This document shows, piece after piece, positions 19,718 through 46,113 of a stretch of 64,000 nucleotides of DNA. Source of the stretch: Trichosphaerium sp. ATCC 40318 (Eukaryota; Protista; Tubulinea); assembly GCA_038496445.1 (NCBI GenBank), contig JALMLS010000411.1:147906-211905 (forward strand), given 5' to 3'. Numbering within the stretch: position 1 is the stretch's first letter; the number at the start of each line of letters is the position of its first letter. The notes under the pieces were generated by a model. The model was given only the letters and a program-made list of their open reading frames with translations. It had not been told where the DNA came from and ran no database searches. The position numbers and the translations under genes are program-made.

Positions 19718-20057
19718 AAAAAGTAATGCTTGTTTCTACACTGTAGAGAAGTCACTACTCAGGGGCACCTCGTTGTCACCTACAGGTGTGCAACGAACAC
19801 ATACTAGACTGATGTTACTAAACCGCCCTCGTACAACCAACCCGTGCTATACAAAGTTGTAAATGTCACGGATCAAACATTTACCGCGGAATTGCAATGC
19901 CAACATGCACCATCACACAGGATCCCCTGCCATCGGAATTAGGCTTTCGCACCGATAACAGATCCAACATGTTGCAAGATGACTCCCTTTAGCCTTGTTA
20001 GAAACTAGAATTTTACCATTATCTGATTTAGAGATCAAAGGTAGCAGCGATCGCTGC
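19718..20057 (-). ncRNA. Putative Pol III structured ncRNA, ~340 nt, family unidentified
   Basis: Many helices with G-U pairs on the minus strand, GC-GAAA-GC tetraloop, possible pseudoknot, no internal T4, terminal T5, upstream CCACAA (-62) and TATTTAAA (-31). Confidence 0.7.
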
Positions 20058-20080
20058 GGTTAGAAAAACAATTTTCAGAA

Positions 20081-20121
20081 TTTAAATACTCTGGATTCTA
20101 TCCCAAAATTAAATTGTGGTT
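20081..20121 (-). promoter_or_regulatory. DUSE-like element AACCACAA plus TATA box TATTTAAA (type-3-like snRNA promoter)
   Basis: Same spacing to the RNA 5' G as at 43187-43226. Confidence 0.6.
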
Positions 20122-29639: not shown

Positions 29640-31520
29640 ATGCAAACCTCACAAAAGCAAATTAAACTAGCCGGTGCGTAGCAGCAAGTGATATAACTTT
29701 CTCGTATTTTAGCGGCTAACTTTTATTCTTTAGCTCGCTCGGTATCACGTGGTCTGCTGACATTACCAAACGATATTCAACTTTACATTTGCTCGCTTGA
29801 TAAAGAAGTTTACATAAAATATCACCTACTGTCTGCTGCAGCTGCTAAAAACACTCACTTTACGAATGATTTTAGAAAAAAGGGTACCTGGAAGCAGTGG
29901 TATTCAACAGGAGAGTTAAAGGCCATGATTCAACTACCTGTTGGCGAGGCAAAACATTGGTATAAAAACGGACAACTTCAGGCGCATTACTACCATAAAT
30001 ACGGAAAGACAAATGGAAAGGCATTGCAGTGGTATGAGAACGGGCAGCTGCAGTATCAATCGTTCTATTTACAAGGCAAAACTCATGGTGAGAGAAAGAA
30101 GTGGCACTCGAATGGGCAGATTGCTGAACAATGCTTCTTTGAAAATGGAAAGGGGACAGGAAAGCATCAAGAGTGGCACGAAAACGGACAGGTAGCAGTA
30201 CAAGGAATGCTAAAAAACGACAAGTATGAAGGAATACTCCAAAAGTGGTATGAAAATGGTAATATGAAAGCATATACAAGCGTTAGAGATGGAATAAAAG
30301 AAGGTGAAGTGAAAGAGTGGTATGAAAATGGCAAACTAAAGATACACTACTTTCGTCAATGCAAAAAAGTGGCGAGGTTTAGGAAAGAATATTTTGAGAA
30401 TGGAAACCTTAAATCTTGTTTGTTCTTCGAAGATAGCACAGATGACTTGTATAACCAAGAAATGATCAAAGAAGGTAACATTAAAACTATCGATGGCAAA
30501 CAATGTCTAAAAGAAACGCACTACCACGAAAATGGAACAAGAAAATTAGAAAAATTCTGTTGCAATGGTAAGCCTTACGGCACTGCAAAACAGTGGAATG
30601 AAGATGGCCAAATTACAGCTTGTGTTGAGGTAAAGAATGGCATACTGTACGGTAAGAGTGTCATGTACAAAGGTGGGAATAAGATAAAAAGTGCTATGTT
30701 CAAGAACGGAAAGAAGAATGGTAAATACAAGGAGTGGCATGAAAATACTGAACTTTCGTTGCGTCTATGTTATATTGATGATGTGGTGGAAGGACTAGTG
30801 GAAGAATGGTATGAAAATGGACAAATGAAACAGATTTATACGATTCACAATGGCAAAAAAGAAGGAGAACGCAAATGCTGGTACAGTAATGGACAGTTGG
30901 AAACTCAACGATTTTGGAAACACGGCTTAGAACATGGAGAGAGTAGGCAATGGTATGAAAATGGTAAATTACAAGTACGGTGTGTAGCAAGGAATGGTAA
31001 AACGGCAGGAAAGTATGAAGAGTTCTACGACAATGGACAATTACACAAGCGCTTCTATGACTGGGATGATAAAGTACAAGGCGAAGTAAAACGTTGGCAC
31101 AGGAATGGACAGTTGTATTTACAGTTTTATGTAAAGGACAGTATTCTTCATGGAGAAGAAAAAGAATGGTATCCCAATGGACAAATGAAGCGATGTTTGA
31201 CTCATGTCAATGGAAAAGCTGAAGGTTTAGCTAGGATGTGGTATAAATGTGGTCAAATTCGTTGTGAGCACTCTTCAAAGAGAGGTAAGAAAGAAGGAGA
31301 GTACAAGGAATGGTACCAAAACGGGAATTTATGTACACAATGCTACTTTGTGAACTCGAAGTATGAAGGAGAGTACAAAGAATGGTATGAGAATGGGCAA
31401 ATGAAACTACAATGTATGACTAGAAATAACTTGGATAATGGTGAGTACAAAGAATGGGATCAAAATGGGAAACTAAAGCTACAATGTGTGAAGAAGAATG
31501 GCAAAAAAGTACTCCAATAA
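29640..31520 (+). CDS. F-box-like + MORN-variant (YwqK-like) repeat protein
   Basis: Exon 1 29640-29673, intron 29674-29733, then LLTLPNDIQLYICSL (F-box-like) in frame with many G..KEWYENGQL repeats (ORF 29925-31520). Confidence 0.88.
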
Positions 31521-32265
31521 ATAAATAATAAAGAAGCAATTCGTCGATAAATAAACTACCAATTTCTTATGTCAGGAGTGAACCACTACGCTATAAAACG
31601 TATACACTCTATTTAATGGCTATGATGCCGTAAAAATCAACAATTGTGTAGCTGTAGCAAAATTTGTTCTAAGAAAAAAGTTAATCATTCGCTTATTCAC
31701 TGATTGTAAACTGATTTCTTATTGACCACAACTGATATTGAGAGCATTAGTCATCATTACTAATACGCCAGTGGCGATACTATGCTTCCCAGTGCCTCAA
31801 AGCGTTTGTAAAATCGACAGTAACCCTAGCACGAGTTTGTTGCAGCTACCGACAGAGATGTACTAACCGATAAAGTGTCAAAGCGCTTGCAGGTGTTGAT
31901 TGCACACACCTTAATAGCACCGTGGTAACTGATGAAGGTAAGAAATCATTGTAACACTGCCCTACAAAGCTTGGTCAATATAGCACCCTCATAGCATAGT
32001 TATAATTTGCTCAATGTATGGTTTTATCTTATGTTGTCATGTATACACGAGGTATTGCAAGAAACTTAACTGCAGTTAAGGCAATGTTAGCACTGTTACA
32101 AAGCAGAGCTATACTCACCTATGTTATTACTTACGCACACCAACTCCACTTGCTTCAACAGAAGCGAATCAAGAAAGAAAGTATTGTATCAACCGATGAC
32201 ACGGCAACGAACATGATTATTCTTTCAAAGTCAAGCGCAATAAAGCCGTGATTACTTGTAACGTA

Positions 32266-33261
32266 ATGGCTGGTTGTTGTAGTACGTTTTTTGGGGCATT
32301 AGCGCTCGCGTTAGTTGGTAGTTATCTTTATTTCTTAAATATTTACCTAAACGATGTTCCTACGCCCGTAAACACTGATGACATCATCGCTGATGGTGGA
32401 AAATTCCTTAAACTTAAAAATGGCCACGTCCTCGAGTATTTCGAGTTTGGAGACCACGAATCAACTGATACGGTGCTATTCATACACGGATACGGCCAAA
32501 CAGGCCGATACATAAAAACACACTCAGAAACGTTCAAAAAAGCAAAACTTCGAGTCATCTCTCCGACTTATCCTGGTTCTGGCTTATCTGAGTTCTTTCC
32601 TTACGAATTCACAGAGTTCCCTAGTATAATGGCTGAACTAATGGATCATGTTGGTATAGAATCATTCTACTGTATGGGTATATCTAATGGAGGACCACAT
32701 GTTATATCTGTTTCTTCTATTCTTGGAAAACGTGTCAAGGATGTTGTTCTGGTTGTACCTCTCTCTGAGACTACAGAGGATAATGATCCTTTTGAGAATG
32801 TACCTGTAGCTTTGAAGGTGTTCATGAAGATACTTATGCTGCCAACATTAAGCGAGATGATGAATTATTATGCAACAGGACCTTCTATAAGAAAAGATCC
32901 ACATCATCATTTTTCTGTTATGCTTCCTGAAGAATGGACTGAGTTTCTACAAGTTTGTAGTAAAGAAGTTGTTGATAATTTCGCTTATGATCATTCAAGA
33001 GGTGTTAAGAGAACTGTTGAGAGTTTAGTACATTTGTTCAGGATCAATAATTTGCCTTGGCATTTAGATTATAAAAAAGTAAGTCAAGGAAGAAATGTCT
33101 ATATTTATTCAGGTATTCGAGACACTTTATGCCCTCCTTCTGGTCAAACATACTTGTCAAAGATTATACCAAATAGTCAACTTATTAGAAAGAATAGTAC
33201 TCACACTACAATAATGATGAGTCATCTTCCAGAAATGTTAGAAAAACTAACACAAAAATAA
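32266..33261 (+). CDS. Alpha/beta hydrolase with N-terminal membrane anchor (intronless)
   Basis: VLFIHG, YPGSGLS, nucleophile GISNG, D in SGIRDTLCP, late His. Confidence 0.92.
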   Translation: MAGCCSTFFGALALALVGSYLYFLNIYLNDVPTPVNTDDIIADGGKFLKLKNGHVLEYFEFGDHESTDTVLFIHGYGQTGRYIKTHSETFKKAKLRVISPTYPGSGLSEFFPYEFTEFPSIMAELMDHVGIESFYCMGISNGGPHVISVSSILGKRVKDVVLVVPLSETTEDNDPFENVPVALKVFMKILMLPTLSEMMNYYATGPSIRKDPHHHFSVMLPEEWTEFLQVCSKEVVDNFAYDHSRGVKRTVESLVHLFRINNLPWHLDYKKVSQGRNVYIYSGIRDTLCPPSGQTYLSKIIPNSQLIRKNSTHTTIMMSHLPEMLEKLTQK

Positions 33262-40882: not shown

Positions 40883-42506
40883 ATGGCAGACTGAACTCTC
40901 CTTTATTTTGTGTCTACCTTAGCTAATAGTACTGTATAGATATTCCTGAACGAGATGATACTCCTAGAGGCAAGTATAGCCAAGTGGCATTCACCTATGA
41001 TACCGTACGTGATGGGTTAAGTTTTTTTTTCAAAACTTTGTGGTTAGGAGGAACCAGCGAAAACACCTGATTCTGAGGATGAGGGTACGTCTCGTAAGCA
41101 TTTTTGCATGCTCTTATATATCATAGAGCCTAAAGAAACCAAAAAAGATGATGGAGTGTATAAAGTACCCTTCGATGTTCCTGTAAACATGATAACTGTA
41201 AGTGTTTGTCAGCCTTTTTTTTTCCTTGGTTAACTTTTTTGTTGCTCTCTAGCCTTCCCATGAAAATATTGTCCTTATTATACAACGTACAGCAGATTAT
41301 ATTAATGATAGTGGTCAATATAACCTTGAAAAAATACGAAAGGAGCAAGCAGATAATTCTAACTTCGGATTCTTAAAAGAAGATAACATGTTTCATCCTT
41401 TTTTTCTGTTTCTCTTAAAGTCAGAAAGAGAAAGAAGTCAAACAGTTATAATGTCAAAGATACATAAAAAGAAGGCAGAAGAACTAGAGAAAGAGCGTCG
41501 TAAAGCTGCAAAAGAGGTAGAAATGGCTCAAGAAGCGAAAAAAAAGAAAGAAGATAATATTATTAGAGTTAAGGGAGAGCTCTTGATATCCAAGTTTGTC
41601 GATTATGTTGTTGCGAATGGACTTGCTTTTGAGAAAGAAATAAGGTCTAGGAATGTTGGTAATAAGTCATTTGGTTTCTTAAACAAAGGACATGCTCTCT
41701 ATGACTTATATCAAGAAAAATTACAAGCTAGTTTCGACAAAATAAAAGCAAAACAAGCAAGAGATACAAAGCGCCAAGAAGATGAAAGAAAAAAAGCTCG
41801 TATGGCTGGTATGACACATGAAGAGAAGATAGCTGCACAAAAGTATTTAGAAGAACAGAAGAAAGCTGAAAGAAGAGATAAGGCGAAGAAAATGCTCGCT
41901 CTCCTTCGCGAAAAAGGTAAAAAGCAATTTCCAGAAGTTTTTTTCTAACACGTGCTGATAAGGTGAGATAACAAATGAAGGCAATAACTCAAGTTGTGAA
42001 GAAGAAAAAGAACATAAAGTAGTAGAAAAGAATAGTAAAAGGACATCTTCTTCAAGATATGATGATGACAGTTCAGATGAATCAAGCAGTGAAAGTTCTA
42101 GTACAAGGTTTGACAAATTTTTTTGCTTCAGTTTTTTTTTTTTTTGTTTTGATGTTCCTTTTCTTACTCTGGGCGTAGTAGTTATAGCAGGAGACGTAAG
42201 AGAAAACGATCTAGATCACGTTCATCATCTTTGTCATCAAGTTCGTCGTACTCATCACGCCAACGAAGGTACACAAGATCGATTTTTTTTCCTTGTTTTT
42301 TTTGTTGATCTCAATTTTTAGCTCCAGAAGACACAAGTCTCGTTCTTCGCGAAGAAGAATCTCGTCATAGCTCTAGATCTAGCTCCCGTCACAAATCACA
42401 CAAGCGCTCTAGATCACGTGACAGACATAGAAGTAAACGAAGGCGTTACGATAGTAAATCAAAGCGTGATAGGCATAAACGAAGATCAAGTAGCAGAAGA
42501 GACTAG
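40883..42506 (+). CDS. SURP/SWAP-domain protein with RS tail (splicing factor)
   Basis: Two SURP-like motifs (NFGFLKEDNMFHPFF; KFVDYVVANGLAFE..SFGFL..HALY) and an RS-rich C-terminus; start codon uncertain. Confidence 0.75.
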
Positions 42507-42588
42507 CAATAAAAAATGAAATAAAAAAAAGACAAAGACTCTGGTTGTTTGCAAAATCTTACAAGTTGTTGTTGTGGTAGACCAAAAC

Positions 42589-43162
42589 AAAAAGAGGTGG
42601 TAGATGCTTGAAGTTCGCAGCGTGTAATCGGATTACCAGGGCGTTGTACAATGATGGGTAGTGCCACTAGTAAGTGCTTTTTCAGACGTGAATTTTTGCA
42701 GAGTTACGTCGAATCAGCGATTTCCTGCCTAGCACCACGTGGTGTTCCCCCCACAAGCTGTGGGGCACTCATTGCGGGCTCGCATGGATATTACAAGGTA
42801 GGGTACCAGCAGCGACCTTAAAGCTTTTAACTAAAGGGTCCAATCGTGTGCTGGGGTCCTTGGGTAAGAACATAAGTTACAGCTGTAGTTCCAAGAGTAG
42901 GAGTATTTCATGGTCGGTGTCCGTCGGGCTTGACGGAAGCCTCCTCCCTATGCTACACCTCCAGGAACAGTAAACAGAAATCAGTGCTACAGGAGAACCC
43001 ACAGAAAGAGTATCTGGGGTTACTCCTGTATTAATGCAGTCTTTTTCAGTAGAGTGAATAGAAGTTGATAGTTGTTAGAGTATTTCGTTTAGATGATGTT
43101 TCGATGAAGGACATCGCCGTTTAGATTCTCATCTATGCTTCATAGACATCACATTCCACCTC
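42589..43162 (-). ncRNA. Putative Pol III structured ncRNA, ~570 nt, family unidentified
   Basis: GC-richer island without an ORF; 5' GAGGUGG pairs with 3' CCACCUC immediately followed by T5; many hairpins; no internal T4; TCCCACAA and a TATA-like box upstream. Confidence 0.72.
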
Positions 43163-43186
43163 GAAAAATAAAAACAAGTAAACGTC

Positions 43187-43226
43187 TTTTATTTACTCGT
43201 TTTTTCAAATTTTTTTTGTTGTGGGA
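43187..43226 (-). promoter_or_regulatory. DUSE-like element TCCCACAA (-64) plus TAAATAAAA (-33)
   Basis: Matches the Dictyostelium upstream sequence element consensus WCCCAYAA at its known ~-63 position. Confidence 0.7.
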
Positions 43227-43747
43227 TGTAGAATGTTTTTAAATAAGCCGTTTGAGGTATGGTTTAAGAGAAGTTGCTTTTTTTGCTAAAAATAACGAAA
43301 ATTCTGTCCTTCAGAAAAGGGACGTGTCATTTTCTGTGACTTAACAAATATTTTGATTCAAATTCAAGTTCTTGTTTAAACGCGCTGTTTAGTATACCAA
43401 CATTAAACGCTCTTATTTGATTATCACGTTGTGCACATCTTTTATTGACACGCGCAGCTTGTCACTAGTTGTTACTTGAACAATACAGGTCAGCATATTG
43501 CTATGAAACAAAAGCCGCTGGTAAAACACTTTCGGCACTGCTTGGACACGTGACGGTCTATCTTGGTGCTACGAAATAATATGTACACTAACCTTGGTAA
43601 TGCTCACACGAAAAGAATACAACGTACGTCTTCAATACTGTAAACGTTATAAATATTTTTGAATTAAGCAACAACTTGTTTGAACACTACGTTTGGTTGT
43701 TTTATGTTTAACTACTAATTAATCACTCTATTTTACAGAAAATGTTG

Positions 43748-46113
43748 TTATTCATCGAAGAGAGAACTCATATCATTTACAAGGGACCTACAAAAACCAA
43801 AATGATCAGATACATACGCCACTTATTTGAAATCAACTTTTTTTTGCAAACAAAAAAAAACCCTCTGCCTACCTTTGCACTGACCGCTTTTCTATGTCTC
43901 TGATTGCTTCTATATCCCAGTCAACTTCAGGGTATACTTCACGAATTATATAAGTCCAATAGTTAGAGATACCACCTCCGGCGTTCTTGATTTGTATCAC
44001 TGACACCTACATAGCATTATTTAGAATTGACAATTGGCAAGGTGATAAAAAAGGTGTACTCGTCGCCAATCCTCTACATCTTTTATGTTGAACTCTTTCT
44101 CCATTCCTCGAATACACTCCGATATATTATCCCAGTTTTTCCAATATCCTTTTGGCAAATTATCTGTACGATCTTAAGAGTTTTAATTAGATGTTGATTT
44201 TTTAAACTAATTAGTTCATATTACCTTCAAAACTTGCACGTGGTTTCCATTTATGGAATGGGTATATAGCTGTTAGAAATCCACTAAAGGTTCCGCCAAA
44301 GTGCCTTCAAACAAATACAGTAAGGTTTAGGAAAAATGATGACAACAACAGTTAGGGAGCTAGCTCTTAAGCTCTTGGATGTTTTCATAAAAAACGAAAC
44401 AACATGTACTGTAGAACACCGCCACCTCCAATGCGAAACATATCTTCGTATCTTACTCTATTCCAATCATTAATTTCATTGATATGTAAATCTTTCTCTG
44501 CCTGTTAAAATAACACGTTAGGTTAGGCTTCTGTTTTTTTAGAGTACTTTTAATACGAAATCAATAATATTATCACTACAGTTCCAGTATCCATAAGGCA
44601 CCTTTGCTACACTCCATAAGCATACTAATAAGTAATTAATCGGGTACCATTTGGTGCAGCAAATTCACTCTTGTCCCAAGTGTAATCAGGGTATGCTGCT
44701 CTGAGAGCTTTATACAAAGATCCTCCGAAATGACTATTTGCAAAAACAAAAAGTTAACAATTACACTCCATTACTTTATCTTTATACCCTAATAATCCTG
44801 CTCCACCAAGTTTTCTAATCATGCTTCGTGGAACATATGATAACTCACTGACATTAGATAAATCCATCTCAGACATGACCTGTTAGATATATTAAGTTAC
44901 ATTGCCTTGAAAGAAAACTTACATTACTGAAAAAACGTCTACGGGCTTCATGGGAATGCCAATAGTTTGCTGGTACAGCGCCTAGAGTAACATGTTTTAT
45001 TTTAAAGGATTGATTGTATCTAAAAGAGAGCGTACCTGCCAGCCAGTGCATATTCTTTTTGTGAAACAAGTATGTAATCATTGCATCAAAATTCTCAAAA
45101 GGTCTAAACATTTTCTGTTGTTAACCGAATAACCTTCAGAACTATAACTCATACGTTATTAGTGAGTGAGCTCCAACATTAAATATATCTTGTTCAGTTA
45201 CATCCTTCCATTGTGAGTTACGTGTAATGTCTAGATCGAACTCGAGCTATCATAGAACTCAGGTTTGAAGTCATATTTTAAAGTACCTCAGCAACACTCT
45301 CACTGTTGTCCCAAAAGTTTCGTGACGCATTGTGAGCAAACTTCCAAGTACGCCAAGATTTTTGTGGATATACAGAAGAAAGAACTTGCGATAAATCTGT
45401 CCAGTAAAACCTGATACAAACAAAAAATCAACATCTTTTTTTCACGTTTTTTTCTTACTTGAACATTTTGGCGCCATACTTTCCTACTACACGCTCATTG
45501 TAGTTATACCATCCATCTAAATCCTTTATGCTGTACTTTTCTGCTATCTATAGCATACAATGAATTGGGAGTGCAAGATGCACACATTCACGCACGTGAT
45601 CAAACAATAGACGAAGAGACTTTGGAGATTCCCAAAAGCCGACCGGCGGTTGTGCTTGTTAAAAATGTCACACGTGTATACGCTGTAATAATAATTGGCG
45701 TACAGAACTTCCATGGAAGCCATGTATAGTTAGGGTACATCGCAGAGAGTATTGTCGGTACAGAAAACTCGTATGTTCTGTAATATCGTTAGAGTATTCA
45801 TGCAGTGTTTTATTGCTTGTACGTAAGTAAGTCTCTTGCGCCAACGACTTCTAAATCCTGCCAAGTGACATTGTACCAATCTTGTCTACAATGTACTCGT
45901 AATGTTTCTTCTACCTTTTAGCCAATTAAACGACAACATTTACGCCGTCTGAGTACGTACAACGTTTAATAACTCTTTTGTTGGTGCTAACGAGTGTTTA
46001 GGCTTTTCAGTACGCTGTACAGTATGATTGCGCCTTTTTGCGCATTTTAAGCGTTTACAGCTAGCTAGTGTCCCAGAATTTAGGAATACCAACAATCCAG
46101 AGCGAGGTAACAT
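43748..46113 (-). CDS. Trp-rich helical repeat protein (W.F...P..FW / WY repeats), possibly mitochondrion-targeted
   Basis: Repeated exons such as PAGFWESP, RNFWDN, PANYWHS, PYGYW, PKGYWKN, YP...W; basic N-terminus without acidic residues; 3' end approximate. Confidence 0.7.

Follow-up and report, generated by a model that had tools for sequence, protein, structure and literature searches.

An expressed 569-nt orphan RNA with a type-3 RNA polymerase III promoter layout in Trichosphaerium

Closest described systems

Large, abundant RNAs made by RNA polymerase III (Pol III) are, to our knowledge, few: SRP RNA, RNase P/MRP RNA, 7SK, and telomerase RNA, each of which anchors an important particle. 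The type-3 Pol III genes (U6, 7SK, RNase P/MRP, and plant and ciliate telomerase RNA) share an upstream element at about −62, a TATA-like box at about −30, a purine start, an oligo-T end, and the absence of A and B boxes. The same features frame a locus of Trichosphaerium sp., found in a 64-kb stretch of DNA analysed as a whole (the window). Its 569-nt body, however, lacks the motifs of those RNAs and is longer than most of them.

The dictyostelid Class I RNAs provide an amoebozoan comparison. Their starts are preceded, at a distance of about 60 nt, by the DUSE, an element used by Pol II and Pol III genes alike (PMC7919456). They resemble the new RNA in this element, the G start, the paired ends, the downstream T run, and abundance (presumed here), whereas the new RNA is about ten times longer, multi-domain, and apparently single copy. 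Class I RNAs are short and defined by a terminal stem and an 11-nt motif; at 569 nt, the new RNA has no Rfam match to their model.

The RNA shares with 7SK a type-3 promoter, a length of several hundred nucleotides, presumed abundance, and repeated protein-binding motifs, here putative; the likeness proposed is a scaffold way of working. It differs in lacking GAUC, the sequence repeated in the 5′ hairpin of 7SK, and in pairing its 5′ end with the very 3′ end, in a terminal stem that extends to the U tail, leaving no separate 3′ LARP7 hairpin. HEXIM, moreover, is a protein found mostly in animals and the lineages related to them (bioRxiv 10.1101/2023.02.19.529146).

Plant and ciliate telomerase RNAs likewise have a type-3 promoter and an oligo-T end (PMC8287931), and a single-stranded C-rich stretch beside a helix is common to both. 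The 569-nt RNA, by contrast, has no TTAGGG template, is about twice as long, and carries its stretch at a great distance from the 5′ end; a search for a pseudoknot found none. Vault and Y RNAs offer paired ends with a U tail and a Pol III type of gene, but the new RNA is three to six times longer and lacks both A/B boxes and the bulged stem motif that binds Ro60, neither half of which is present. Searches of the literature for an amoebozoan telomerase RNA or 7SK equivalent found none.

The gene and its transcript

A first-pass annotation, made from the sequence, had proposed an unidentified structured RNA gene of about 570 nt, free of open reading frames, running on the minus strand from G43162 to C42594. 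These coordinates hold, and the proposal is borne out by fold, base composition, and transcript contigs. The non-coding body (42594–43162, minus strand; 569 nt plus a U tail) contains no AUG frame longer than 34 codons on that strand. Its G+C content is 46.6%, against 37.7% for the window, which places it in the top 0.01% of 569-nt windows. Relative to shuffles, its folding z is −4.4 on the minus strand and −2.8 on the plus strand. As had been claimed, the first seven nucleotides (GAGGUGG) pair with the last seven (CCACCUC), with a probability of at least 0.97; perfect 7-mer pairing at fixed ends is expected by chance at about 8e-5.

A T5 run (42589–42593, minus strand), the predicted Pol III terminator, directly follows the body, and a T4 run lies beyond it at 42584–42587. 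The body itself is free of T4 runs, as the annotation had stated, but this absence alone is insignificant, occurring in 28% of shuffles.

The island is wholly or partly present in 19 public runs from seven studies. In the best runs, the share of matching words is about 0.55 of a 1-kb query, which is the island's own share of that query. Within positions 41500–44500, contigs from three runs match the following stretches: 42600–43154 from X4 (RNA-seq), 42599–43155 from X8 (a second study), and 42619–42836, part of the island, from X16. In all three, the flanks and neighbouring exons are uncovered, low-complexity noise aside. (X8 carries the label 'DNA?' by guess; DNA would be expected to cover the flanks as well.) The X4 and X8 contig ends, from two studies, fall 5–8 nt from the predicted RNA ends, in agreement with the set ends of the original proposal. 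A fourth run, of library type not on record, lacks the island but contains the convergent neighbour's mRNA, which is spliced and ends at 42517. No diverged second copy of the island, at 80% likeness, occurs in X4 or X8.

The island is thus a discrete transcript with the predicted ends. It is probably non-polyadenylated, and in total-RNA libraries it may be more abundant than the neighbouring mRNAs, although contigs carry no level. Taken singly, the upstream motif, the lack of T4 runs, and a template-like 9-mer (discussed below) are each at chance level. What lies beyond chance is the joint placing of the features around a perfect terminal stem, together with the match to the transcript ends. 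Positions 43162–42594 almost certainly constitute a real non-coding RNA gene.

The remaining possibility, that the island is a chance structure, a neighbour's 3′ UTR, or read-through, draws on the chance level of each promoter feature singly and is most improbable: the contigs are limited to the island and their ends match it, the mRNA of the neighbour stops at 42517 in a run without the island, and G+C content and folding both stand out.

Contigs carry no strand, and we infer transcription from the minus strand. The folding z-scores favour that strand (−4.4 against −2.8). In X4, read-1 adapter sequence directly follows 43154 on the plus strand, which fits a dUTP-type library of a minus-strand RNA; this is a single contig from a library whose strandedness is not known. 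Pol III transcription of the plus strand was rejected: that strand has four internal T4–T5 runs and no terminal T run. One earlier argument for the minus strand fails. The proposed long-range helix (42983–42971 with 42731–42718) has an ensemble probability of about 0.003 and costs 5 kcal/mol.

Neighbouring genes

The convergent neighbour (41388–42517, plus strand) is spliced; one of its exons is SURP-like, and its tail is rich in Arg and Ser. Its introns, 42106–42176 and 42267–42319, are seen in run X18. Its mRNA ends 77 nt from the 3′ end of the 569-nt RNA. A second allele or paralogue, with four changes and two 3-nt gaps, is also expressed. The upstream neighbour (43750–45600, minus strand) has many exons and encodes Trp-rich repeats of the PKGYW type; it is absent from the protein collection. 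Elsewhere in the window lie two plus-strand frames: an intronless 531-residue ORF of MORN-variant repeats (29925–31520), a kind common in giant viruses, and a 337-residue alpha/beta-hydrolase-like ORF (32248–33261) with no match in a word-index protein search. One protein of the window is present in the MMETSP collection.

Promoter

The DUSE/USE-like upstream element, TCCCACAA, occupies −64 to −57 (43219–43226, minus strand), where the first-pass annotation had placed it; its CCACAA lies at −62 from G43162, and the contig 5′ ends are at 43154–43155. The cited dictyostelid consensus, WCCCAYAA, is itself at chance level in the window (six occurrences against 6.6 expected), and only the position of the element counts. 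The TATA-like box noted at −33, TAAATAAAA, is present in the sequence (−33 to −25; 43187–43195, minus strand); it sits in an A+T-rich region and counts for little alone. The locus displays the type-3 layout: an upstream element near −60, a TATA-like box near −30, a terminal oligo-T run, and no internal T4. A Pol III origin is the reading that this layout suggests.

An imperfect palindrome (43170–43204) overlaps the TATA-like box, with 13-nt arms (43170–43182 and 43192–43204) around a 9-nt spacer. The 120-nt stretch containing it has a local z of −4.0 on the plus strand.

The window also contains a second candidate Pol III-type RNA gene (19718–20121, minus strand), which would yield an RNA of about 335–340 nt with a T5 end. 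Relative to G20057, CCACAA lies at −62 and TATTTAAAT at −37. With the T5 end, this indicates that the promoter layout recurs in the window. The second RNA has no Rfam match, and its folding z is only −1.5. Homology between the two RNAs was considered and rejected (P 0.89); their likeness is limited to CAAGCAU near both 3′ ends.

Predicted structure

The predicted ensemble consists of four parts: an interrupted terminal stem, a 5′ domain, a stem-loop in the middle of the molecule, and, towards the 3′ end, a five-armed multiloop. The terminal stem, interrupted as 7 + 4 + 5 bp, joins a 5′ strand (43138–43162) to a 3′ strand (42594–42613) with pair probabilities of 0.97–0.99. All positions below are on the minus strand.

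The 5′ domain is predicted to comprise a G-free single strand and a 17-bp hairpin. Ahead of these, two copies of AUCUAAACG (43126–43118 and 43094–43086) flank a small hairpin within 43086–43126; this 9-mer is found nowhere else in the 64-kb window. The G-free stretch (RNA 82–100; 43063–43081) has an unpaired probability above 0.7 throughout. It is followed by the first copy of a duplicated motif (RNA 104–122; 43041–43059): AUUCAC, four nucleotides, and CUGAAAAAG. This copy may form a small hairpin (probability 0.66); pairing with the CUGAUU at 42984–42979 reaches only 0.04. The 17-bp hairpin (42988–43030) is the most stable local element, with probabilities of 0.94–0.98 and a local z of −3.8.

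The middle of the molecule folds as an irregular stem-loop domain (RNA 195–275; 42888–42968) with a tip hairpin at 42920–42937 (probabilities 0.67–0.98). The 3′ domain is closed by a helix between 42877–42885 and 42618–42627 (0.68–0.90). Within it, a stem-loop at 42806–42854, whose closing helix (RNA 309–314 with 352–357) has a probability of 0.84, directly precedes the template-like stretch UACCCUACC (42797–42805), predicted to be single-stranded (unpaired 0.63–0.85). Then come a G+C-rich stem-loop (RNA 375–440; 42723–42788; 0.65–0.91) and a stem-loop with a GA/AA 2x2 internal loop and a bulged U (42676–42718; 0.91–0.99). The latter contains CUGAUU and the second motif copy (RNA 470–486; 42693–42677). 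Here CUGAUU pairs with GAAAAAG across the GA/AA internal loop with a probability above 0.9. A last stem-loop (RNA 490–530; 42633–42673; 0.73–1.0) completes the domain.

Three of the four hairpins first proposed recur in this ensemble: 42988–43030 (17 bp), 42749–42765, and 42920–42937. The fourth, 42733–42744, is predicted to pair with 42766–42780 and not with itself.

The island contains three internal repeats of at least 9 nt, against 0.55 expected (P 0.02). In the RNA, AUUCAC with its CUGAAAAAG occurs twice, as does AUCUAAACG; CUGAUU, AGCCCG, and CUGAAAAAG each occur twice, in agreement with the annotation. The duplicated motif does not reach significance when scored as a gapped self-alignment (P 0.135). 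In the model, copy 1 does not take the fold of copy 2, and the idea that the 5′ domain mirrors the GA/AA loop was rejected (probability 0.04).

Seven variant events distinguish the island in other samples. Five fall in unpaired positions, only a weak preference (P 0.12); of the other two, one preserves its pair, and the variant at 43026 breaks a firm G-C pair in the 17-bp hairpin. In the domain at 42888–42968, one strain variant changes G·U to G-C, and two others lie in loops. X8 has a 2-nt deletion in a G run of the stem-loop at 42723–42788, which stays intact. True covariation was absent among these near-identical strains, beyond which the searches found no homologue.

Searches for relatives

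Rfam yields no match at gathering level across the whole window, and only chance hits at E values up to 10 at the locus. This comparison, proposed with the annotation, leaves the 569-nt RNA without a family match. A tRNA scan found none.

The claim that the RNA lacks U6, SRP helix 8, RNase P/MRP P4, and U3 boxes agrees with a motif scan, in which the family motifs were short consensus patterns. The Sm site and the U6 ACAGAGA box are absent, as is any exact A or B box in the 569 nt. SRP helix 8 (GNRA loop, AGG/AGCAG internal loop) is missing from both the scan and the Rfam results.

Pattern scans for the GA/AA stem-loop returned 34 viral and 50 metagenome loci; neither blastn nor nhmmer showed homology for any of them. 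Six of the metagenome matches (L048, L049, L055, L057, L038, and L056) fold as hairpins; they are non-homologous and probably bacterial coding sequence. The exact 3′ end is absent from viral contigs, the stem-loop from GTDB, and the island from phages by blastn. Apart from near-identical strains, these searches of metagenomes, viral contigs, GTDB, and phages uncovered no homologue.

Synteny was pursued through the neighbours, with spliced genes searched by single exon. The SURP-domain exon led to no close relative, its best matches being 21–40% identical. The neighbouring ORFs are absent from the protein collection, and two other genes gave no matches or only distant ones.

A scaffold RNA and its rivals

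The best explanation, tentative and not quite reaching an even chance of being right, is that Pol III makes an RNA restricted to this lineage, which carries a duplicated motif and acts as a protein scaffold in an abundant particle. A gene-external type-3 promoter (upstream element at −62, TATA-like box at −33) would drive a single gene, and Pol III would transcribe it from G43162 to the T5 run at 42593. The product would lack a poly(A) tail, measure about 573 nt, and close on itself through a long interrupted stem between its two ends. These ends may protect the RNA, and the U tail would be left free for La-family proteins. Three arms and the long G-free single strand would display the repeated short motifs, and the duplicated motifs could bind at least two molecules of a putative partner protein. 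The RNA may be the scaffold or decoy of an abundant ribonucleoprotein. In this it would resemble 7SK, vault, or Y RNA while belonging to none of their families. The scaffold role is proposed largely by exclusion: the RNA has no template, catalytic, or guide signature.

Yeast snR30 and algal U3 are near the 569-nt RNA in length. A strongly diverged rRNA-processing guide, U3-like or snR30/U17-like, with single-stranded parts pairing to pre-rRNA, is the first rival, although an unlikely one. Besides length, it could claim four CUGA sequences, a mismatched box C at RNA 11–17, and a mismatched snR30 m1-like sequence at RNA 257–265. The details are contrary. For U3, neither GAUC nor GGAUCA is present, box C is not matched exactly, and the 3′ stem has no adjoining CUGA; where U3 has a free 5′ domain, the 5′ end here is held in a stem. 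For snR30/U17, the single m1-like stretch lies mid-molecule, and m2 and a 3′ ACA are absent. The Rfam models for U3 and snR30/U17 find nothing at E values up to 10.

Telomerase RNA is about equally unlikely. Here, single-stranded UACCCUACC, bounded 5′ by a helix, would template a TAGGG-type repeat. The promoter and oligo-T end are those of plant and ciliate telomerase RNAs (PMC8287931). UACCCUACC is predicted to be unpaired right after a stable helix, placed as a template boundary element would be (PMC4993307); a further helix encloses it, and X4, X8, and X16 all carry it unaltered. Such a 5′ helix (probability 0.84) is, however, commonplace by chance in folded RNA. The annotation had correctly located UACCCUACC at 42805–42797, but as a TAGGG template it is at chance level, a template-like 9-mer of this kind occurring in 23% of shuffles (P 0.23); the telomerase reading is weakly supported at best. 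The minimum TTAGGG template is one repeat plus at least 1 nt (PMC8287931). The RNA contains no 7-nt permutation of CCCUAA, and a template of one repeat plus at least 1 nt is present for TAGGG only. An assembly error hiding a TTAGGG template was considered and rejected, since three other samples show no indel.

Further points tell against telomerase. No U-rich pseudoknot was found downstream: U4 occurs nowhere, and only 5-bp chance helices are available, although the trypanosome telomerase RNA also lacks a pseudoknot. UACCCUACC is 420 nt from the upstream element, against the 200 nt used for known type-3 telomerase RNAs. Recovery from mixed samples without neighbour mRNAs suggests more RNA than the usual telomerase level. 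A CUAACCCUAA-type template on another TERT-binding RNA of the same genome would be incompatible with the telomerase reading.

Known vault RNAs measure about 80–190 nt and have internal A and B boxes. A much enlarged vault-associated RNA, whose terminal stem would bind a TEP1/TROVE protein and load into vaults, is therefore improbable at 569 nt, with no exact A or B box and no Rfam match. In its favour are the paired ends, the U tail, and the Pol III type of gene; TEP1 does recruit vault RNA (PMC10491885).

Equally improbable is a selfish or virus-derived Pol III transcript, either SINE-like or a VA/EBER-like decoy from a giant virus. Trichosphaerium sp. has many genes from giant viruses, in a genome with 37.69% G+C and a mean intron of 75 bp, values with which the G+C content and short introns of the window agree, as do its virus-like genes; the same report does not mention telomeres or non-coding RNA (PMC10521059). 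Against this origin, there is no copy in viral contigs or phages, and the runs contain no diverged copies. The gene is single in the window, without target-site duplication or A tail, and has an external host-type promoter in place of internal A/B boxes.

About as improbable is an RNase P or MRP RNA paralogue with an expanded and rearranged body. It would account for the long interrupted terminal stem and the type-3 promoter, and RNA 438–448 and 529–538 loosely resemble, by eye, the strands of P4. But CR-I and CR-V of MRP and CR-I of RNase P are absent even at one mismatch, CR-II and an exact CR-IV are absent as well, and Rfam has no hit.

Implications

The locus encodes an orphan RNA that is expressed; its promoter layout is of a known type, and its body lies outside the catalogued families. 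It is possible, although rather doubtful, that amoebozoans have a class of large and abundant Pol III RNAs, not described before, that scaffold a particle through duplicated motifs, and that this RNA is its first example. Less likely, it would be the first telomerase RNA from an amoebozoan, its template being of the TAGGG type. The RNA can be studied directly, since its ends are known and its host is in culture. An expressed RNA of 570 nt without a family match points to an as yet undescribed particle in the Amoebozoa.
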